A stretch of DNA of 64,000 bases, from positions 186,001 through 250,000 of IMG/VR virus record IMGVR_UViG_3300023184_000026, one strand, 5' to 3'. Below the pieces are notes generated by a model. That model searched no databases, was not told the origin of the DNA, and worked only from the letters and a program-made list of their open reading frames with translations. The translations under genes were made by a program, and so were the position numbers. How positions within the stretch are numbered: the stretch's first letter is position 1; the number at the start of each line of letters is the position of its first letter. This document shows, piece by piece, positions 2,723-24,638 of the stretch.

Positions 2723-3385
2723 TCATTTCACAAACCTGCCATCTTTTCCACGGGGACATTTACTGGTTAGTCCTCTCCACCATCCAGTCGGAATTTCTTT
2801 TGATTTTTCGTATTTTTTATTAGAAATTCCATCTGTTATCCAACAGCTTCCTAATAGCCACGTGCGAGTTTTTTCTATACTTTCAGCCGACATTGTTTTA
2901 CCCAAATGCATTTTTCTATGATGTTCCTTACGTTCTTCGCTCCATATGGTGCCAGATGCATACGTGTTACCAATCAGTGAATTGGATATTTTATTTCTTG
3001 ATTTGATTGTATGATATCGCCCCTCCATCGGGCCGTTGGCTGGAATTGCTATGTTATACCCTCTCACTATTGAATTGTAAAATTCAACCCAGTGAATTTC
3101 TTTTGAAGTTAAAAGTTCTTTTATTGGCTCACACTCTTCCAAAATTACTTTATCAAAATTATCATATCCATACTTCTTCAAAGCATTATATAATTTTGTC
3201 TGTGCCTTGCACTCATGACGTTTGTATCTTCCCCATCTTGTATAAATATTATCGGCACTTTGTCCGATATACCATTTTCCGTTAGTTTTGTTTCTTAGAC
3301 CGTAGATACCGCAACATTTGGCGTTTGAGGATTTTTTCTTTATTTCGTTCGTAGTATCGTTTTGATTTTGTTCGGTTGTTTGCAT
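2723..3385 (-). CDS. GIY-YIG homing endonuclease with NUMOD3-like repeats
   Basis: GIYGLRNKTNGKWYIGQS, LYNALKKYGYDNF, GYN; C-terminal basic helical repeats and WITDG; start uncertain (nearest in-frame ATG 3385). Confidence 0.9.
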   Translation of the reverse strand: MQTTEQNQNDTTNEIKKKSSNAKCCGIYGLRNKTNGKWYIGQSADNIYTRWGRYKRHECKAQTKLYNALKKYGYDNFDKVILEECEPIKELLTSKEIHWVEFYNSIVRGYNIAIPANGPMEGRYHTIKSRNKISNSLIGNTYASGTIWSEERKEHHRKMHLGKTMSAESIEKTRTWLLGSCWITDGISNKKYEKSKEIPTGWWRGLTSKCPRGKDGRFVK

Positions 3386-3425
3386 CAATTTCTTCTTTCG
3401 TAGTGTATATTTTTTTTCTTCCCAT
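3282..3425 (-). CDS. 47-aa basic protein overlapping the GIY-YIG 5' end in another frame
   Basis: MGRKKIYTTKEEIDANNRTKSKRYYERNKEKILKRQMLRYLRSKKQN; directly after TATTTATTGAT; paralogue at 22530-22703. Confidence 0.7.
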   Translation of the reverse strand: MGRKKIYTTKEEIDANNRTKSKRYYERNKEKILKRQMLRYLRSKKQN

Positions 3426-3524
3426 ATCAATAAATATAGAGGTGAGAGAATAAAAGTGAGAGAAATCGTCATTATTTTTCGTTTTTTTCTGGACTTTTTA
3501 TAAAAACCGTTCATAGTTCTATTC

Positions 3525-8328: not shown

Positions 8329-8402
8329 TGCAGGATGGTGTAAAAGTAGCACGCCACGCTCATAATGTGGAGACAATCGCGCGATTCGGTTTCCTGCAAC
8401 CA
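8329..8402 (+). tRNA. tRNA-Met(CAT), atypical T-loop
   Basis: TGCAGGA/TCCTGCA acceptor, CCACG-CTCATAA-TGTGG anticodon arm, T-loop CGCGATT, ACCA end. Confidence 0.75.
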
Positions 8403-8473
8403 ATTTAAAAAGAGACGATCAAAAGGTCGTCTTTTTTGTTGACTTTTATAAAAAGTAGTTCATACTTTATATA

Positions 8474-8641
8474 ATGAAACGCTACACAAGTAAGAAACAA
8501 GGATATGTTATTGTGAATGGTGAATATGTGCCTGTCAAGCAAGTGAAATTTCTTGACATTGAAGAAGACATTCAAGGCATTGATGTGATGACCTTTGAAT
8601 ATAAAGGTGAAACTCGCAAGTCGTATGTTGTGATTCGCTAA
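8474..8641 (+). CDS. 55-aa hypothetical early protein
   Basis: MKRYTSKKQGYVIVNGEYVPV...; promoter at 8439. Confidence 0.7.
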   Translation: MKRYTSKKQGYVIVNGEYVPVKQVKFLDIEEDIQGIDVMTFEYKGETRKSYVVIR

Positions 8642-8705
8642 AACTATGAACTATTCTATTCAAAATAACTTGACTTTTTATAAAATCTAATCATACTGAT
8701 ACACG

Positions 8706-9095
8706 ATGAAACTCATTACCAAAGAAATTGATTCTAAACTGACTGCTGCTGGCGACACTGGCACCAAGGTCATCTGCAAGTTCTTTAACCCCTGTGGTGC
8801 GGGCACGTGGCTCATCACAGGTCGTGACCCAGAAGAGCCAGACATTCTGTGGGGTGCTGCTGACATTGGCTTTGGTTGCGTGGAGTTTGGCACCATCAGC
8901 CTAAGCGAACTGGAGAATGTGAAGCTCAGGTTTGGGCTCAAGATTGAGCGTGATCTGCATTGCAGCGTTGAAGGTGCAGACGTGAACACGTTTCTTGACC
9001 GCGACAGTCTGTGCGGCTTGCAGGAAACCGAAGATCGCGGTGCGCACGAGGCCGTGAACACGTTTCTTGACCGCGACAGTCTGTGCGGCGTCTAA
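8706..9095 (+). CDS. DUF2958-like protein with duplicated C-terminus
   Basis: KFFNPCGAGTWLIT...GAADIGFGCVEFGTISLSELE...IERDLH. Confidence 0.8.
   Translation: MKLITKEIDSKLTAAGDTGTKVICKFFNPCGAGTWLITGRDPEEPDILWGAADIGFGCVEFGTISLSELENVKLRFGLKIERDLHCSVEGADVNTFLDRDSLCGLQETEDRGAHEAVNTFLDRDSLCGV
8981..9089 (+). repeat. perfect 37-bp direct repeat x2 with 35-bp spacer
   Basis: CGTGAACACGTTTCTTGACCGCGACAGTCTGTGCGGC at 8981-9017 and 9053-9089. Confidence 0.95.
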
Positions 9096-9096
9096 A

Positions 9097-9258
9097 ATGA
9101 ACGACAAAATTCATGCCGCTATTGGCAACTGTCCGAAATGCGGAAAACAGTTTTGGTTAAATGATGTTCCCCTCAAGGGGTTCTGTTGGGGCACCGAAGA
9201 AAAACCACACGTCCAAGTTGTAAAAAAAATTCCATCCAGCGTTCAACCTTACAAATAA
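9097..9258 (+). CDS. small zinc-ribbon protein
   Basis: CPKCG...CWG...H. Confidence 0.55.
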   Translation: MNDKIHAAIGNCPKCGKQFWLNDVPLKGFCWGTEEKPHVQVVKKIPSSVQPYK

Positions 9259-9259
9259 A

Positions 9260-9487
9260 ATGGCTAAAAAACTATATCGTATTCCTGTTGAGTGGGCTGT
9301 AACAGGCACGTTGCTTGTTGAAGCAGAAAGTCTAGAAGAAGCATTGCTTGAAGCAGAAGATGCTCCTTTGCCAGAACCCGAGGATTATATTGAAGGTACA
9401 TTTGAGATCAATCGTCAAATGATTTCGTTTGTCAACAAGAAATTGACAAAAGAAGAAAAAGATTTTTGTGAAAGAGAAATAATTTAA
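9260..9487 (+). CDS. DpnD/PcfM-like acidic protein
   Basis: KLYRIPVEWAVTGTLLVEAESLEEA. Confidence 0.7.
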   Translation: MAKKLYRIPVEWAVTGTLLVEAESLEEALLEAEDAPLPEPEDYIEGTFEINRQMISFVNKKLTKEEKDFCEREII

Positions 9488-9781
9488 AAATCTTTAACGA
9501 TTTTTTAGTTTTGTTTTGACTTAATAAAAAAAGTTGCTATTTATTATGAGTAGCAACTTTATTTTTTCCCATGAAACTCTCAAATTCATCTGGGTTTTCG
9601 TTCATATACAATCACCCTGCTCTCACCGTCGTTAAATCGACTCCTGCTTACGTCAAGATAAATCCAGAAAACAAAACAAAACTTGTGTTAGAAAAAAGAG
9701 AAGAAAACAAGAAAAAGAATTGACAATTTTATAATCGGTGACATGCTAATATATGTTAGATAATAACATTATGGGTTTGTT

Positions 9782-10843
9782 CTATTGAAATCTACCATTG
9801 GGTGCTTTATTACACCCAATTGATTCTATGGATTTTGCTCGTCTGTAACTGTTGTTGGGAACTATTATTCCCATCAGCATGCATCTCTTTTTTAATCCAA
9901 CATCACTCAACCCAAATTGAGGACCAAGTTTTGATAAAGGAGTATTATTGACCATTTCTTGCAATTGTTCTTTTTCCGGCAGTTGAATTTTTCTGGATGC
10001 ATGGTTATGAATATTGGCACATTTTTTACAACGAATTGAACGTTGTGCAATATTTTTATCACAATCTTTACACTTTTTTTGTTCTTTTTTCTTGTTTATT
10101 GGTATGTATACATCATACTGAAAATTACTTACGGGTCTATGGTGAAACTGGATATCATCTCGTGCTTCTACCGCGAAGTTCTCAATTCGAATTTGAGTAG
10201 ACCCACCACTCTTCCAAACATCATAATCAAAATCATTGAGTAGTGGTACATTGACAATTGTGTCCAGAAGCGAAGAAATATATTCGCTTTTGAAGCATAA
10301 TGAATAATGTATTTCTATTATTTTCCACCCAGCAGCAGTAATCAAATCATGTTTTTCTTGATAATATGGTTTTAATTTTCCTATAGCGTCATAGTGCTGA
10401 TTTCCATTAATTTCTAAACATACCATTTTTTCCGGAAATGCAATATCCACAGCAAATGATCTATCTATTAATGGGGTAAATTCTGGCAAAAATTTTATAT
10501 TCTTTGACAAAATAAACTCTTTTAGTTTCTCACACGGAACTGATTTAAACTTTGAATGACGTTTCCAAACGTGCTTATCTGGATTTTCTTTTAGCCACAC
10601 TTTTCTTTTGTCAGATATTATCTTCTTGGCTTCTGATGTATGCTTACGAAAACCTCCACAATCTTTACAATAGAGTGAACGTGGCTTGGCATCTTTATCG
10701 CATTTTTCACATTTTTTAACTTTTCTTCGTTTTCTGCTTGGATTTTTTTCACACCATCTAATGTGATTTGCTTTTTTGTGGGGAGATAAGTCAAATTCTA
10801 AATCACAGTGTTGACAGGTCCATTTACTCGGTGTATTTTCCAT
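9782..10843 (-). CDS. putative homing endonuclease: Zn fingers plus DUF559/Vsr-like PD-(D/E)XK domain
   Basis: CQHC...HIRWC, CEKC/CKDC; FAVDIAFPEKMVCLEINGNQHY...GWKIIEIH; C-terminal CKDC...CKKC and HTH-like tail. Confidence 0.8.
   Translation of the reverse strand: MENTPSKWTCQHCDLEFDLSPHKKANHIRWCEKNPSRKRRKVKKCEKCDKDAKPRSLYCKDCGGFRKHTSEAKKIISDKRKVWLKENPDKHVWKRHSKFKSVPCEKLKEFILSKNIKFLPEFTPLIDRSFAVDIAFPEKMVCLEINGNQHYDAIGKLKPYYQEKHDLITAAGWKIIEIHYSLCFKSEYISSLLDTIVNVPLLNDFDYDVWKSGGSTQIRIENFAVEARDDIQFHHRPVSNFQYDVYIPINKKKEQKKCKDCDKNIAQRSIRCKKCANIHNHASRKIQLPEKEQLQEMVNNTPLSKLGPQFGLSDVGLKKRCMLMGIIVPNNSYRRAKSIESIGCNKAPNGRFQ
10133..10208 (+). tRNA. tRNA-Arg(TCT), nested antisense inside the nuclease ORF
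   Basis: GGGTCTA/TAGACCC, D stem GTGA/TCAT, TCGTG-CTTCTAC-CGCGA, CTCAA-TTCGAAT-TTGAG, ACCA; 76 nt. Confidence 0.9.
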
Positions 10844-10975
10844 ATCAATATATATCCGAAATCAAACCCAAAACGCAACATTATTTAAAAATTTTATTTT
10901 CATAGTTCAAGTCACCAATTTTTGTTTGACTTTCATAAAAACTCCGCTAGAGTAAAGTGAATGTTCTTTTTTACT

Positions 10976-11047
10976 CCTCCTATAGCTCAACGGTAGAGCG
11001 AAGAACTCATAATTCTTGGGTTACAGGTTCGAATCCTGTTGGGAGGA
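10976..11047 (+). tRNA. tRNA with CAT anticodon (Met or lysidine-Ile2); no encoded CCA
   Basis: CCTCCTA/TGGGAGG, AAGAA-CTCATAA-TTCTT, GGTTCGAATCC. Confidence 0.88.
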
Positions 11048-11095
11048 CTATTTTGTTCTTTACTTTTTATAAAAATCTGCTAGAATATCTAAACA

Positions 11096-11311
11096 ATGAA
11101 AAATATCTCATTTCGCTCTCTTGTTATTGATTTGCTTGATTCGCCTGATGGCATTCCAGAACCTACTTATGTAAAGTTGGTTGAATTTGCTGAAACAAAC
11201 CATCCAGATACATATGCTGACATTTGGGATGCCACAGAAGGTGGTGATGGGAACAATGGTTATTGTGTGTATCTTGATGAAGATACTGCACAAGAATTGC
11301 GCAAAAAGTAA
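11096..11311 (+). CDS. hypothetical early protein
   Basis: Own promoter at ~11060. Confidence 0.7.
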   Translation: MKNISFRSLVIDLLDSPDGIPEPTYVKLVEFAETNHPDTYADIWDATEGGDGNNGYCVYLDEDTAQELRKK

Positions 11312-11320
11312 TTTACACGT

Positions 11321-11394
11321 GGGAGGTTAGTTTAATGGTAAAACTGGTGCTTTATAGGCGCTTGTTGGGGGTTCGAATCCCTCACCTCCTACCA
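11321..11394 (+). tRNA. tRNA-Ile(TAT)
   Basis: GGGAGGT/ACCTCCT, GGTGC-TTTATAG-GCGCT, GGTTCGAATCC, ACCA. Confidence 0.85.
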
Positions 11395-11463
11395 CTTTTT
11401 TATTGACATTTATAAAAACTCTGCTAGAGTAGATAAAGTTAAGTAGAGGTTCTTTCATATTTT

Positions 11464-11538
11464 GGTCTTGTAGCTCAATGGTAGAGCAGTTGACTTTTAA
11501 TCAATTGGTTGTGGGTTCAAATCCCACCGAGACCACCA
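11464..11538 (+). tRNA. tRNA-Lys(TTT)
   Basis: GGTCTTG/CGAGACC, GTTGA-CTTTTAA-TCAAT, GGTTCAAATCC, ACCA. Confidence 0.93.
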
Positions 11539-11541
11539 TTT

Positions 11542-11638
11542 TCAAGTAGATACCCGTTTAATGAAAATAATCGCCCAATATGTCTGAGGCTGATTACTAC
11601 GGTGCGGAAATTGACAAATACACCGAACATCTACTTGA
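11542..11638 (+). ncRNA. putative closed-stem structured RNA
   Basis: Terminal TCAAGTAGAT/ATCTACTTGA perfect 10-bp stem; inner AATCGCC/GGCTGATT and CGGTG/CACCG stems. Confidence 0.5.
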
Positions 11639-11823
11639 TTCAATTTATCCTTACTCAAAGAAGGAGGTAACTTACTCTTTGAAGGAGGATATCAGCGATG
11701 AACCCAAAAACAAGGAGGGAGTGGGCTCGGTTCCCATAATAGTGCGTGAAAGCTCGCACCATCGCACAATTTTAGTTTGACAAAATATAAAATACGTTCA
11801 TAGTTATGTATGTTCTTTTTCAG

Positions 11824-11909
11824 GCCAACTTCGCATAATCTGGCATTGCAGCACTTTTGTAAAGTGCCGTCGAAAGACATTATCGGTTCAAATCCGTTAG
11901 TTGGCTCCA
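11824..11909 (+). tRNA. tRNA-Thr(TGT) with long variable arm
   Basis: GCCAACT/AGTTGGC, GCACT-TTTGTAA-AGTGC, variable arm GTC-GAAA-GAC, GGTTCAAATCC, TCCA. Confidence 0.8.
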
Positions 11910-11963
11910 CTTTATTTATCTCATATCGCGATACTTATGTTTGTTCTTTTTACATTTTTATTT

Positions 11964-12076
11964 GAGGCGGCGGCGTGGAAGGACACGCAGCCTTTCGAGT
12001 CTATGACAACAAGAGACCCCGCTAAGTTGCGGTTAATTGGCGTTGTCAGTTGGTATCAATTCCAACCCGTCCTCTA
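11964..12076 (+). ncRNA. tRNA-like RNA with D and T arms but an expanded central region
   Basis: GAGGCGG/CCGTCCTC, GCGT-GGAAGGAC-ACGC, GTTGG-TATCAATT-CCAAC; centre TGACAAC/GTTGTCA and CCGC-TAAGTT-GCGG. Confidence 0.55.
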
Positions 12077-12081
12077 TTTTT

Positions 12082-12156
12082 GGCCCTATAGTTTATCGGT
12101 TAGAACATTCGGTTTTCATCCGGAAGGGCGGGATTCGATTTCCCGTAGGGCTACCA
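12082..12156 (+). tRNA. tRNA-Glu(TTC)
   Basis: GGCCCTA/TAGGGCT, TTCGG-TTTTCAT-CCGGA, CGGGA-TTCGATT-TCCCG, ACCA. Confidence 0.9.
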
Positions 12157-20785: not shown

Positions 20786-20828
20786 AAATAGAGTTGCTTT
20801 TTATAAAAAAATAGTCAGTATCTATAAT

Positions 20829-21116
20829 ATGAAAACCGTAGATGATCGCAATGAATCTCAGAAAATCACCCACAAGTGGGCAATCGTTGCCAAGGACAAG
20901 TATATGAGCGGCTGGGGTGGAGCAACAGGTGGAGCCAGCCGTGTGGCGTGGGCTGTGGAATCATATGCTAGTGTTGACAAGCTATTGAGCTGGGTCAAGT
21001 CGCGAAATGAAATGAAATATGTTAATGTCGTAAATTTGAATGATTATCGTGCTCCACGCAGCACAGCACACTTTCATGTTTATGTTGCAAATGCCAGTCA
21101 TCCTGCGTTTGACTAA
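20829..21116 (+). CDS. conserved-looking phage hypothetical protein
   Basis: DKYMSGWGGA...RNEMKYV. Confidence 0.75.
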   Translation: MKTVDDRNESQKITHKWAIVAKDKYMSGWGGATGGASRVAWAVESYASVDKLLSWVKSRNEMKYVNVVNLNDYRAPRSTAHFHVYVANASHPAFD

Positions 21117-21160
21117 AAAATAGAGTTGCTTTTTATAAAAACTCTGTCAGTATTCTAAAC

Positions 21161-21577
21161 ATGAAGATCACCAAGCACACCACAATTGCTCTGACAATCA
21201 GCGAGATCAAGCAAAGTCTGTCTGACTATCAATCCGAGATCATGCATGAAATGCTGCTTGAGTATTTCAATCTTCCATATAATTCTGACAAATTTTGTGG
21301 ATTGTCATATGACGAAAAACAAAAACTTATGGAATGGTCCAATTTGCTTGTGAAAGGCACTCATAGTGAGGAGTTTAATAAACTCAGCAATGGTCGTTGG
21401 ATTCATACGCCATCATTTAACAGCGGATTTGTTGAATTGGTTGAATCTTTTCCACATATGTTCTTGACAGTGGATTTGTTTGATGGTCTAGATGCCAAGG
21501 ATTTTAGCGTTAAAATTGTGCATAACAATGGCGATGAGACATTCGTCAACAGTGAAAATATTCTCAGCAACATTTGA
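21161..21577 (+). CDS. hypothetical early protein
   Basis: Promoter 21126. Confidence 0.7.
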   Translation: MKITKHTTIALTISEIKQSLSDYQSEIMHEMLLEYFNLPYNSDKFCGLSYDEKQKLMEWSNLLVKGTHSEEFNKLSNGRWIHTPSFNSGFVELVESFPHMFLTVDLFDGLDAKDFSVKIVHNNGDETFVNSENILSNI

Positions 21578-21620
21578 TTATTATCTCGACTTTTTATAAA
21601 AACCAGTCATAGTTTACAAC

Positions 21621-21974
21621 ATGAACTCTATCTTTTCTCCTGATCTGGTAAACAAGCCCACGGTGGTATATGGTCCACAGGTTGGCGACATATTGGTCAG
21701 CATATCTGGCTATGAGGCCAGCATTGCTAGTTGGGCCAAGGTTGTGGGTGTGACTGGCAAGAGCGTCAAGATTGTGCGCTTGCCCGCCGACAACAAATAC
21801 ACTGGCGGCGGTGGCATGGAATGGATCAGCACGCCTGCCACGGACCGCATCAAGGGCGAGACCGAAACGAAACGTTTTACTGCTGATGGCGACGGCTATA
21901 GGGTCAAGAACAACAGCTACAGCAACTATTATGTTTGGAGTGGCAAGCCAATTGAGTGCTACAACTGGCATTGA
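21621..21974 (+). CDS. hypothetical early protein
   Basis: VGDILVSISGYE...VVGVTGKSV; promoter 21586. Confidence 0.75.
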   Translation: MNSIFSPDLVNKPTVVYGPQVGDILVSISGYEASIASWAKVVGVTGKSVKIVRLPADNKYTGGGGMEWISTPATDRIKGETETKRFTADGDGYRVKNNSYSNYYVWSGKPIECYNWH

Positions 21975-22663
21975 TCTTTCAAGAAATGGCGTTTCATTGC
22001 CTCTGAGAGAGCAACCCTGTTGCTCTCATCAGAGTAATGTTTGAACAGTGCGTCGGATATTTTCTTGTTGCGTTCCTTACTGAATGTGCGACCTTTCATC
22101 CTTTCTGACATTTTTAGTCTTTCTTCTTCGGCAATGACCCTTCCACATTTTTTATTCTGCTCAGGGGTTCTTCGCTTCCGTGCATCGCTTAGTGCTTTTC
22201 TGTGAGCATCACTAAATTTTTTTCCTTTTTTTGCCGCACTTATATTTTTTCGATGTTCCGGACTGTTAGTGGCTCCTGATCTAAGGTCTCCACCATAACC
22301 GCCATCCGTTAGATTATATCCATTGTTCTTTGAGTCATAATACTTTATCCACACTATTTCTTTATTGCTGAGTTCATCTTTGTCGCATTCTTCCAGTATT
22401 ACTTTGTTGAAATTGTTTATTCCATATTTTTTGAGGGCTCGATAGATTTTAGGCTGAGTTTTACAACTTACATTATCGTATGCAGTTTTCCACCTATCGT
22501 GGATATCAACACTCAGTCCGATATACCATTTATGTGGTTTGAGTTTGTTCTGTAGTCCGTATATTCCTATCTTTTTTGACATGGTATCGGTTACGAGCAT
22601 TTTCTCTTTCTCTGTTGACATTTTTCCAGTAACTTCGCATTCTGTAAATTCTGTTGAGTTCAT
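21959..22663 (-). CDS. GIY-YIG homing endonuclease with NUMOD3-like repeats
   Basis: GIYGLQNK...WYIGLS, RALKKYG, GYNLTDGG, SPEHRKNISAAKKG; likely start ATG 22582 (MSKKIGIY). Confidence 0.9.
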   Translation of the reverse strand: MNSTEFTECEVTGKMSTEKEKMLVTDTMSKKIGIYGLQNKLKPHKWYIGLSVDIHDRWKTAYDNVSCKTQPKIYRALKKYGINNFNKVILEECDKDELSNKEIVWIKYYDSKNNGYNLTDGGYGGDLRSGATNSPEHRKNISAAKKGKKFSDAHRKALSDARKRRTPEQNKKCGRVIAEEERLKMSERMKGRTFSKERNKKISDALFKHYSDESNRVALSEAMKRHFLKDQCQL

Positions 22664-22703
22664 CGAGGTGTTCCTTTGTTCGGTTTAGTTTTTTTCTTCC
22701 CAT
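22530..22703 (-). CDS. 57-aa basic protein overlapping the GIY-YIG 5' end in another frame
   Basis: MGRKKLNRTKEHLDELNRIYRMRSYWKNVNRERENARNRYHVKK...; after TATTTATTGAT. Confidence 0.7.
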   Translation of the reverse strand: MGRKKLNRTKEHLDELNRIYRMRSYWKNVNRERENARNRYHVKKDRNIRTTEQTQTT

Positions 22704-22775
22704 ATCAATAAATAGTATTTACTTACAAAAAACCTTACAAAATTAGTTTTTATTTTAGGTTGAGTGTTCATAGTT

Positions 22776-22810
22776 GAGGGAGCAGCGTGGTGGCTGCTCC
22801 CTCTTTTTTT
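22776..22810 (+). terminator. intrinsic terminator
   Basis: GAGGGAGCAGC-loop-GCTGCTCCCTC plus T7. Confidence 0.85.
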
Positions 22811-22855
22811 ACTTTGCCGCTTGACTTTTATAATAAATAAATCATTATCTTAAAT

Positions 22856-23074
22856 ATGAAATTTGTTATCTTCTGCAATGCCGCCAATTTGAAAACCTAC
22901 AACAACACTTGGATTGTTGTAGCTGCCAACACATCATATAAAGTGTTGAACATTCAATTTGATGAATATGGCATCATACGTTCAATTGTTTTTTCTGTGA
23001 GCAATGACATTGTTGCTTTTGAACGCAGCAATATTACTGGAAAATTTGGCAGCAATTTTGCTTTGAGTGCTTGA
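22856..23074 (+). CDS. hypothetical early protein
   Basis: Promoter 22821. Confidence 0.65.
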   Translation: MKFVIFCNAANLKTYNNTWIVVAANTSYKVLNIQFDEYGIIRSIVFSVSNDIVAFERSNITGKFGSNFALSA

Positions 23075-23106
23075 CATTTTATAATAAGTAAGTCAGTATT
23101 TATAAC

Positions 23107-23322
23107 ATGAAATCCAAGAAACTTACCAAGACATACTTTGAACTCTACACGATTGGTGCCACAAGTGGTTGGGGAGAATATGACGATGAAACCTTGGACA
23201 CCACACTCAAAACACTCAAATCTGCTATGAAAGAAGCAAAAATTCTGGCAGATGAAGGTCAAACTGTCAAGATCAAGCAGGTCAAAGAATTGCTGTTTAT
23301 CAAAGGTGAAAAGGCTGCTTGA
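23107..23322 (+). CDS. hypothetical early protein
   Basis: Promoter 23071. Confidence 0.7.
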   Translation: MKSKKLTKTYFELYTIGATSGWGEYDDETLDTTLKTLKSAMKEAKILADEGQTVKIKQVKELLFIKGEKAA

Positions 23323-23353
23323 CTTTTATAAAAACTCTGACACTATCTATAAC

Positions 23354-23677
23354 ATGAACCTCGTTAATAACAAAGAAATCAAGTTCAAGAACGGTCTGGT
23401 TATTCCTGTTGGCACAAACCTAAATGTAAATTTTAAGATTGGTGGCACTGTGTGCGAACTGTCTGGTGGCAGTGCTGGCGGCGTTCCTGTGACCATGAAG
23501 CTGCGTTGCTCTAGTCTGCCACGCTACTTCACCAAGTTCAAGGCTCCTTCGCTCAAGACCATGGAAAAGTGGAGCAACGATGGTGTTGCCAAGTCAATGC
23601 TTGGTCAGGTAGTTGAGCCAGACGGCTATGACAGCGAAGGCAGTCCAAGTTGGATGCTGGTCGCGGGCATTATCTAA
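23354..23677 (+). CDS. hypothetical early protein
   Basis: PSLKTMEKW...VEPDG...PSWML; promoter 23319. Confidence 0.75.
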   Translation: MNLVNNKEIKFKNGLVIPVGTNLNVNFKIGGTVCELSGGSAGGVPVTMKLRCSSLPRYFTKFKAPSLKTMEKWSNDGVAKSMLGQVVEPDGYDSEGSPSWMLVAGII

Positions 23678-23686
23678 ATAAAAAAC

Positions 23687-23827
23687 ATGAAAATCACCTA
23701 CACTTACAGAGGCTGGTATGTATTTTACTATAACAGCAAATATGTTGCACAACATGCATATGCAACATCATATGAAGCAGACACACAAGAACAGTTGCTG
23801 AACACCATCGACGAGTTCATGAAATAA
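23687..23827 (+). CDS. 46-aa hypothetical protein
   Basis: MKITYTYRGWYVFY...; followed by terminator-like hairpin 23831-23858. Confidence 0.55.
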   Translation: MKITYTYRGWYVFYYNSKYVAQHAYATSYEADTQEQLLNTIDEFMK

Positions 23828-23893: not shown

Positions 23894-24166
23894 ATGATGA
23901 ACACCACTGCCTCGTTCGCCGCTCGTGTCGCCGCCTTTCACGCCGCCAATGCGGTCGCAGCCGCCAATGCCAAGTACGCCGACTATCGTGTGTACCGCAC
24001 AGAGGGCGACCGCCGTGTCCTCACGGTTGAGGTGTCGTTTCCCAACGACGTTCGCAATGCCAACTTCGGCGACGTATGCTTCTACGACGCTGCCACCGAC
24101 ACCTTTCGTGACAGCACGGAGGTTGATGTGGCTGGTACCACGTTCTATGTTGAGCGGGTGGCGTGA
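23894..24166 (+). CDS. hypothetical early protein, GC-rich
   Basis: Promoter ~23859; last gene of the array. Confidence 0.7.
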   Translation: MMNTTASFAARVAAFHAANAVAAANAKYADYRVYRTEGDRRVLTVEVSFPNDVRNANFGDVCFYDAATDTFRDSTEVDVAGTTFYVERVA

Positions 24167-24294
24167 TCCACGCCACCCCCGCACGGGTGGCGGGGGGGGG
24201 GGGACGGTGGCTTTAACCCCCCACCCCTCCCCCCTATAGGTGGGGGGTTTGGTGCCTTCTAGGTGGGGTAACCCCCCCCCCCCCACGGGGGTCC
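24167..24294. other. GC-rich hairpin plus poly-G/poly-C tracts marking the end of the early module
   Basis: CGCCACCC/GGGTGGCG stem, runs of ~12 G and ~13 C, two TAGGTGGGG motifs. Confidence 0.8.
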
Positions 24295-24638
24295 ATATTC
24301 ATTCTCTATTTGGTCTCAATTTTTCTTATATACTTTTCATATATACAAAAAGCATATGTTGTGCATATATTTATCATATAGTTAAAATATCATATATCCT
24401 ATACACACTTTTATGATATTATACTCTAATTTTTGAATTTAGAATTTTTCCAATTTTTTTATATATACTTTTCATATATATCAAAAGTACCTTTTTCCAT
24501 ACCTACTTTTTCACATCATGCCCTTTGTTTTTTGAAAAAAACACGGGGCAATTTTTCATACCCAACTTTTTGTATATATCATGCATTGTTTATGTTTATA
24601 TGTACATAAATGTTTTGAGCATATACTTATTGATATAT

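Follow-up and report, generated by a model that had tools for sequence, protein, structure and literature searches.

A free-standing GIY-YIG homing-endonuclease cassette in which two genes are read from the same bases very probably lies at 21966–22751 on the minus strand of a 64,000-nucleotide stretch of viral DNA (the window, by which the whole stretch analysed is meant). This high confidence covers both the anatomy of the cassette and the reality of its two genes, one for the nuclease and one for a small basic protein. The window corresponds to bases 186,001–250,000 of a 297,258-bp IMG/VR virus record, which has 37% G+C and is complete according to CheckV. Near-identical DNA is confined to freshwater and lake metagenomes, and the nearest cultured phages share only 20–35% identity, in a helicase; therefore, the source is an uncultured freshwater jumbo phage, the host of which is unknown. 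The features of this cassette (cassette 2), its surroundings and a related cassette in the same window (cassette 1) are as follows, with all translations made by table 11.

21966–22751, minus strand: mobile cassette of 786 nt, delimited by the empty-site allele
22722–22743, minus strand: two direct repeats, ATTTTGTAAG and TTTTTGTAAG, with a period of 12, operator-like
22708–22714, minus strand: TATTTAT box starting 11 nt before the peptide ATG, a putative −10 element
22530–22703, minus strand: gene for the small basic protein of 57 aa (MGRKKLNRT...)
22572–22703, minus strand: conserved 44-residue domain of the small protein, from alignment A2 and the AlphaFold2 model
21959–22663, minus strand: GIY-YIG homing endonuclease ORF of 234 aa in the +1 frame, with its ATG 40 nt after the peptide ATG
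22530–22663, minus strand: dual-coding overlap of 134 nt, corresponding to the 30-residue N-terminal extension of the nuclease
22313–22570, minus strand: GIY-YIG catalytic domain, nuclease residues 32–117 (PF01541)
22217–22267, minus strand: NUMOD3-like DNA-binding motif of borderline score, nuclease residues 133–149
21621–21974, plus strand: convergent flanking phage gene
22776–22803, plus strand: intrinsic terminator of the flanking plus-strand gene
2723–3462, minus strand: cassette 1, comprising two copies of the repeat TTCTCTCAC, a box, a peptide gene and a GIY-YIG ORF
3282–3425, minus strand: peptide gene of cassette 1, 47 aa
2723–3385, minus strand: GIY-YIG ORF of cassette 1, with its ATG at +40

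The Mobile Unit and its Insertion Site

Contigs of lake metagenomes, compared over 20800–23700, contain an empty-site allele in which 21965 is followed, after ten other letters (CATCACTAAG), by 22752. This allele was found in contigs of X10 (DNA) and X15, and the same allele is present in X12; the filled allele coexists in X10 (contig 4, 21755–22791), and X8 contains a filled variant with a third repeat copy. Such assembled contigs show presence, not transcript ends. Since exactly 21966–22751 is missing from the empty allele, the mobile unit consists of the two direct repeats, the TATTTAT box, the peptide gene and the nuclease gene, and the original prediction that the peptide belongs to the mobile unit is thus supported.

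The cassette is intergenic, between the end of the flanking gene and the terminator of that gene (22776–22803, plus strand), which the insertion has separated from it. The last two sense codons and the stop codon of the nuclease come from the flank. The predicted 16-nt overlap of the nuclease 3′ end with the convergent gene at 21621–21974 (plus strand) held, the nuclease stop codon being located inside the latter, which ends in ECYNWH before its stop codon in the filled allele versus ECYNHH in the empty one. No intron family was detected at E ≤ 1 in 21400–23200, and no Rfam family at the cassette.

Nuclease of the Cassette

The nuclease matches TIGR01453 over residues 31–211 with 90.2 bits (cut-off 56) and PHROG 314 with an E-value of 4e-35, and the homing-endonuclease models of PADLOC match it too. 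PF01541 scored 20.7 bits on the nuclease ORF, just below its cut-off of 22.6, and 23.7 bits, above the cut-off, in the genome search; NUMOD3 is borderline, at 18.8 bits versus a cut-off of 20.4. The protein is therefore classified as an ordinary I-TevI-like GIY-YIG homing endonuclease, with the reservation that cleavage of the empty allele is inferred and that no assay data exist. Its first 30 residues are outside every family model. When viral contigs were searched with the nuclease, only one weak relative was obtained.

Three Diverged Cassettes in One Genome

The original prediction described the present cassette as a second copy of the one near the start of the window, on the grounds of an upstream string shared with about 3411–3436, a 57-aa basic ORF, and a nuclease in the +1 frame with the peptide stop beyond the GIY codons. 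Each of these elements was confirmed. The 26-nt string TATTTATTGATATGGGAAGAAAAAAA is found at 3411–3436 and 22689–22714 (both minus strand) with 0 mismatches; the window contains no further match allowing up to 3 mismatches, 100 shuffles gave 0, and the 21-nt core of the string occurs only twice in the entire 297,258-bp genome. The small ORF at 22530–22703 (minus strand) starts with MGRKKLNRTKEH, and its stop codon (22530–22532) is downstream of the GIY codons (about 22555–22563), so that the two ORFs overlap by 134 nt.

The term second copy held only in part, because the same elements are present but the cassettes are not near-identical. Outside the 26-mer, cassettes 1 and 2 have approximately 60–70% of nucleotides in common, and their nucleases share 44–54% identity in the catalytic domain only. 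The 26-mer is the most conserved part across the whole cassette family. The two cassettes of the window are thus diverged paralogues rather than recent copies; a recent duplication as the source of the 26-nt identity is rejected, since the remainder has diverged and the string is a family-wide conserved core. The predicted count of two cassettes was extended to three: a third is located outside the window at genome position 138,537 (plus strand), and its peptide is 58% identical to the 57-aa peptide. The peptide gene has exactly three copies in the genome, all of them at GIY-YIG genes; no peptide accompanies the fourth GIY-YIG gene (genome position 282,174) or two HNH genes.

The Small Basic Protein is Encoded by a Real Gene

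In viral contigs, a search with the peptide yielded 47 loci. These were collected with peptide-derived patterns and cannot show how many homing endonucleases are without the peptide. When 1.84 billion representatives were searched with a profile of 40 distinct peptides (alignment A2), 262 clusters (50% identity) matched, including 45 at E ≤ 1e-10; nearly all of the 262 are stand-alone ORFs of 44–83 aa.

At all loci the peptide frame is open for 45–60 codons in A-rich sequence. Residues M1, G2, R3, Y25 and Y40 are invariant, and K4, K5, L6, N7, R8 and R23 nearly so; G2, Y25 and Y40 are kept even though the third positions of their codons vary, and substitutions elsewhere are conservative (R/K, Y/F/W). 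The entropies at codon positions 1, 2 and 3 of the peptide frame are 1.10, 0.89 and 1.32, respectively. In ten close pairs, which are non-independent and were compared over codons 15–41, changes synonymous for the peptide and non-synonymous for the nuclease numbered 72 (2.67 times the expectation) versus 19 of the opposite kind (0.79 times), and omega over the same bases is about 0.20 for the peptide frame versus about 1.06 for the nuclease frame. According to the original prediction, a peptide frame free of purifying selection would be the refuting result; this was tested and not found. The small ORF is, in all likelihood, a real gene under purifying selection, a judgement made jointly with that on the anatomy and the nuclease gene.

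Two readings in which the product is of no importance were weighed against this evidence. In the first, the ORF would be non-coding and its conservation would reflect a DNA or RNA signal, such as a promoter, a ribosome-binding site of the nuclease or a homing site. In its favour, the conserved codons for K10 and E11 (AAGGAA) contain an AAGGA resembling a Shine-Dalgarno sequence, which in cassettes 2 and 3 stands 8 nt before the nuclease ATG. The open codons at all loci in A-rich sequence, the codon-type entropy pattern and the lack of an Rfam family or a stable structure all speak against it, and it is all but excluded. In the second, the ORF would be a uORF-like translational governor of the nuclease, the translation of which matters and the product of which does not. 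The expression of homing endonucleases is tightly restrained, as in the case of I-TevI, and the start codons are 40 nt apart near the presumed 5′ end, so that ribosomes on one frame must cross the other start. However, the strong amino-acid conservation (omega, invariant residues with variable third positions, conservative substitutions) and the occurrence of the same domain in frame within longer proteins argue against it, and this governor is judged highly improbable, more so than the frameshift considered below.

Fold and Family of the Small Protein

The conserved 44 residues comprise an MGRKKLNRT arm followed by a helix bearing two R-Y-Y/W motifs. AlphaFold2 on alignment A2 predicted an extended basic arm (residues 1–9) and one long helix (residues 10–43) with a pLDDT of 88.5. 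No known family accounts for the protein in the libraries searched: Pfam, NCBIfam and PADLOC contain no family for it; neither do the PHROGs, the best E-value being 0.005 for phrog_17714, of unknown function; its profile gave only insignificant matches to PDB sequences (E ≥ 0.19); and the ESM Atlas returned only unnamed clusters of 53–59 aa. An AT_hook lead from the Atlas was sub-threshold (0.89, with AT_hook in 14% of one cluster), and the R-G-R-P core of the AT-hook is absent from the peptide, which begins with M-G-R-K-K. Since tblastn against 50,697 GenBank phages also gave no match, the family is so far restricted to metagenomic viral contigs.

Two Frames Kept in One Stretch of DNA

The nuclease frame shows its own mark of use across the overlap. 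For 37 distinct overlapping loci, scored from peptide codon 15 to the peptide stop, stop codons in the +1 frame numbered 0 versus 40.6 ± 5.0 expected (minimum 23) from synonymous shuffles in which the codons were those of the peptides themselves. Stops are not avoided in the +2 frame (146 versus 140 expected), and as an internal control three loci without the long overlap have 2, 6 and 3 stops in the +1 frame. Every overlapping locus also has a +1-frame ATG, either at +28 to +40, inside the peptide's D/N-E codons, or 5–44 nt before the peptide ATG; only L035 departs from this, with its ATG at +73. Because the nuclease frame is kept open and its own ATG is always present, both frames are inferred to be translated. 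Translation of the nuclease frame through the overlap is held to be as probable as the two-real-genes reading of which it is part, and no expression data bear on it: none exist for the cassette, the sole well-covered RNA run (X15) being from a phage with the empty allele and leaving the cassette uncovered.

The selection on the two frames is unequal. At the amino-acid level the peptide frame is constrained, and the nuclease frame shows stop avoidance only; the first 30 residues of the nuclease are the +1 reading of the small gene and are otherwise free.

Alternatively, a single protein might be made from both frames, either through programmed +1 frameshifting of the ribosome or through slippage of transcription on an A run; in it, the peptide would be the N-terminal domain of the nuclease, like OrfA-OrfB in IS3/IS1 transposases. 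In-frame versions do occur in nature (L044, P0042 and P0064), and A-rich runs lie near the junction, such as GTCAAAAAAGAT in this cassette. Several points oppose this rival. First, a late frameshift would need neither a nuclease frame free of stops across the whole overlap nor an ATG of its own that is always present. Second, the frame relation is +1, versus −1 in IS elements. Third, no common shift site or slippery heptamer is found at the junction across loci, and the predicted fold of 22500–22710 (minus strand, 211 nt) is no better than those of shuffles (z = −0.41). Fourth, P0042, a GIY-YIG fusion, has lost its second RYY motif and kept the +40 ATG; it looks like an indel derivative, and the idea that it proves a functional fusion was rejected. 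In L045 and L018 the overlap is short, as in ordinary two-gene operons. The rival is accordingly regarded as very improbable, and a trans-frame product is inferred to be unnecessary, given the nuclease's own ATG and stop-free overlap, in the absence of protein data. A −1 slip at A_AAA_AAC, leading from an upstream nuclease-frame ATG into the peptide frame, was considered separately and rejected, since L023 has no such heptamer and the peptide ATG is invariant.

A Module Shared among Nuclease Families

Each of the 47 loci has a nuclease gene linked to that of the peptide. The downstream proteins include two classes of GIY-YIG nuclease (SGIYKI and CCGIYGL), zinc-finger/NUMOD3 proteins, an HNH enzyme, DUF723 and DUF4379 treble-clef proteins, and an MTES_1575 restriction-endonuclease-like protein (PD-(D/E)xK-like). 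The small protein itself appears in three arrangements, as a long overprint, as the upstream gene of a two-gene operon, and as an in-frame N-terminal domain of HNH nucleases. Among the last, P0062 carries four motif repeats and an HNH domain in frame, is found on five contigs and has a TATAAT box 5 nt before its ATG; P0074 and P0103 are also in-frame fusions to HNH proteins. The peptide can thus be regarded as a domain that acts together with homing endonucleases and here stands alone.

Upstream Repeats and Presumed Promoter

A TATTTAT-like box is present in most related loci and begins 11–14 nt upstream of the first ATG, whichever frame that belongs to. Ahead of this box, most loci carry a pair of direct repeats, in some cases a set of three, at a period of 11–15 nt; each repeat consists of a T-rich part and a variable, class-specific core. 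A few related loci show no clear repeat pair. The box was not called in a sigma-70 consensus scan, the host being unknown. In this genome the repeat motifs are found only at the three cassettes, and the idea that repeats and box derive from a general phage promoter was rejected for this reason.

The class of the repeat core matches the signature of the peptide helix one-to-one in at least seven classes, listed here with the core first.

GTAAG: helix RMRSYW
GTCAC: helix WR.RRMRYYN
CTAAT: helix R(L/V/Q)(R/K)R.Y
CCAAC: helix YERFY
CTCAC: helix RS.RYY
CTAC: helix RERQMRYYW
TTCGT: helix RMRYYW.H

Nuclease types are mixed within these classes, the core following the helix and not the nuclease. Between cassettes 1 and 2, both repeat and helix differ, and the 26 nt between those parts are identical. 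The match may nevertheless be mere linkage, which remains possible because the two parts are 30–100 nt apart and independent contrasts are lacking.

Proposed Role of the Small Protein

As the repeat core tracks the helix signature rather than the nuclease type, a cassette-specific DNA-binding protein, whether regulator or partner, is favoured; its function has not been shown. In the preferred explanation, the small protein would be a sequence-specific DNA-binding module that recognises the pair of direct repeats ahead of the box and thereby controls the cassette's own promoter. The TATTTAT box would be the −10 element of that promoter and would give rise to a leaderless mRNA or one with a very short leader, an inference for which transcript data are lacking. 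Such an mRNA would explain why the two ORFs have to start within about 45 nt and hence why they overlap, and both ORFs would compete for the same ribosome-loading region. The outcome would be an expression module that is portable and has been joined by recombination to many different nucleases.

The explanation as a whole is favoured, by a modest margin. That the small protein binds DNA is likewise the better-supported side of a question not yet settled, being inferred from composition, fold and domain context only, with no match to a known DNA-binding family. That it binds its own repeats as an autoregulator is also an inference without binding data, and the balance tips slightly against this step. 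A bolder reading is no more than possible: the 44-residue arm-plus-helix would be a new minimal sequence-specific DNA-binding domain, the helix of which reads the variable core of 5–7 nt, and together with repeats and box it would form a portable self-regulating module exchanged among homing endonucleases of at least three catalytic superfamilies.

The main rival to promoter control is that the small protein acts in trans as a subunit of the nuclease and aids target binding or cleavage on the empty allele, as the non-covalent counterpart of the in-frame N-terminal domain of some HNH enzymes. The existence of the three in-frame HNH fusions, one with four motif repeats, and the unbroken linkage of peptide and nuclease genes support this idea. 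It is also general knowledge that homing endonucleases are built from small modular DNA-binding units (NUMOD/IENR), which is in keeping with a subunit. However, one peptide class pairs with different nuclease families, which must have different targets, and the peptide class follows the upstream repeats, not the nuclease. A predicted complex of peptide and nuclease gave an ipSAE of 0.00 without controls and is evidence neither way. On these grounds a subunit is considered unlikely, and control of the cassette's own promoter is retained as the preferred role.

Comparison with Known Systems

Free-standing GIY-YIG homing endonucleases of phages (I-TevI/Seg-like; TIGR01453, PHROG 314) resemble the present one in having a catalytic domain followed by NUMOD3-like motifs, of only borderline score in the present case, in their intergenic location without an intron, and in presence/absence polymorphism with altered flanking codons. 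The known ones, however, are single genes, the proteins of which start a few residues before GIY, whereas the present ORF starts 30 codons earlier, and this stretch is overprinted by a second conserved gene and preceded by a 5′ region with its own repeats and box. The orfA/orfB pairs of IS3 and IS1 are likewise mobile, with a small basic upstream ORF that overlaps a catalytic ORF, and have relatives fused in frame; unlike them, the present pair has a +1 rather than a −1 relation, its second ORF has its own ATG and remains open throughout the overlap, and the loci have neither a slippery site nor a stimulatory structure in common.

In I-TevI autorepression, the homing endonuclease limits its own transcription through its DNA-binding part at a promoter operator. 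The concept is similar to that proposed here, but the binder would be a separate 57-aa protein and the operator a direct-repeat pair, both of which are inferred in the absence of binding data. NUMOD/IENR modules are, like the present one, short and helical and occur with GIY-YIG and HNH nucleases; the present module is repeated up to four times in P0062. The present module has no match in Pfam NUMOD or other libraries, a negative result that extends to the motif repeats of P0062 for Pfam NUMOD/IENR, and it is N-terminal and usually a separate ORF in another frame. Finally, overprinted phage pairs such as lambda Rz/Rz1 and those of phiX174 similarly produce two proteins from the same bases, with one frame constrained and the other largely free; what sets the present overprint apart is that it is part of a mobile homing cassette and that unrelated nuclease families exchange its module. 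The full arrangement, namely an overprinted small gene with a repeat-bearing 5′ region that is mobile as one and swapped among nuclease families, was not found in the full-text literature searched, nor in any family library. The nuclease is of known type, and the arrangement is a variant that is apparently undescribed.

Free-standing homing endonuclease genes are generally treated as one-gene selfish elements. The present element contains a second conserved gene, placed in another frame over the start of the nuclease, and the same module stands before nucleases of the GIY-YIG, HNH and PD-(D/E)xK types in many freshwater phages. It is also a clean example of overprinting, with constraint on one frame and no more than an absence of stops in the other, and gene callers split or miss such cases. 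Should the small protein regulate or aid the nuclease, the view of how such elements restrain their own toxicity and how they spread would change, and the family would offer a DNA-binding module of very small size, together with matched binding sites that vary in nature.

Related cassettes and their variants

The genome contains one more cassette of the same kind, located outside the window.

G000:C1:138480-139560 (whole-genome coordinates), + strand: third cassette

Its direct repeats are TTTTGTAAG/TTTAGTAAG, and its 54-aa peptide, which begins MGRKSHNLTKEQ, is identical to that encoded by a viral contig (locus L008). The +1 frame is a GIY-YIG ORF with its own ATG at +40, counted in nucleotides after the peptide ATG. 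As for repeat number, a natural variant of cassette 2 in one lake metagenome run (X8) has a 12-nt insertion at window 22721 that yields the direct repeat in a third copy, and three copies are also found at another viral-contig locus, L009. One 43-kb viral contig harbors three peptide cassettes (L013, L025, and L044) within 10 kb, at 23.5-33 kb; the last of these, a short ORF with the peptide and a zinc-finger in frame, has the appearance of a decayed element.

Hypothetical proteins of two mushrooms, Candolleomyces eurysporus and Pleurotus pulmonarius (P0068 and P0085), contain one or two copies of a motif very similar to that of the peptide (MGRKKLYATEEERKEA..RxYY; GRPKIYTTPE..); these proteins resemble the cassette-1 peptide (MGRKKIYTTKEE).

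Surrounding sequence features

The motif GACTTTTTATAAAAAC, with the variant TTGACTTTTATAATAAAT, recurs approximately 20 nt upstream of + strand genes and probably represents the promoter type of the phage itself. Many related cassettes are also flanked by this GTCAA/TTGAC motif.

Window 3490-3510, 21590-21610, and 22821-22848: recurrent motif
Window 8329-12153, + strand: five clustered tRNA genes (48-80 bits against Rfam RF00005)
Window 23900-24300: sharp island of 62-66% G+C (genome average, 37%)

The island directly adjoins a stretch of 20% G+C (window 24300-24500), and open frames on both strands give G/P/A-rich translations.

A GIY-YIG gene without the module

A fourth GIY-YIG gene also lies outside the window.

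G000:C1:282165-282950, + strand: GIY-YIG gene, N-terminus MDKSGIYKI

No peptide ORF accompanies this gene, which also lacks a long N-terminal extension and a repeat/box region. It provides a useful internal contrast to the peptide-bearing cassettes.
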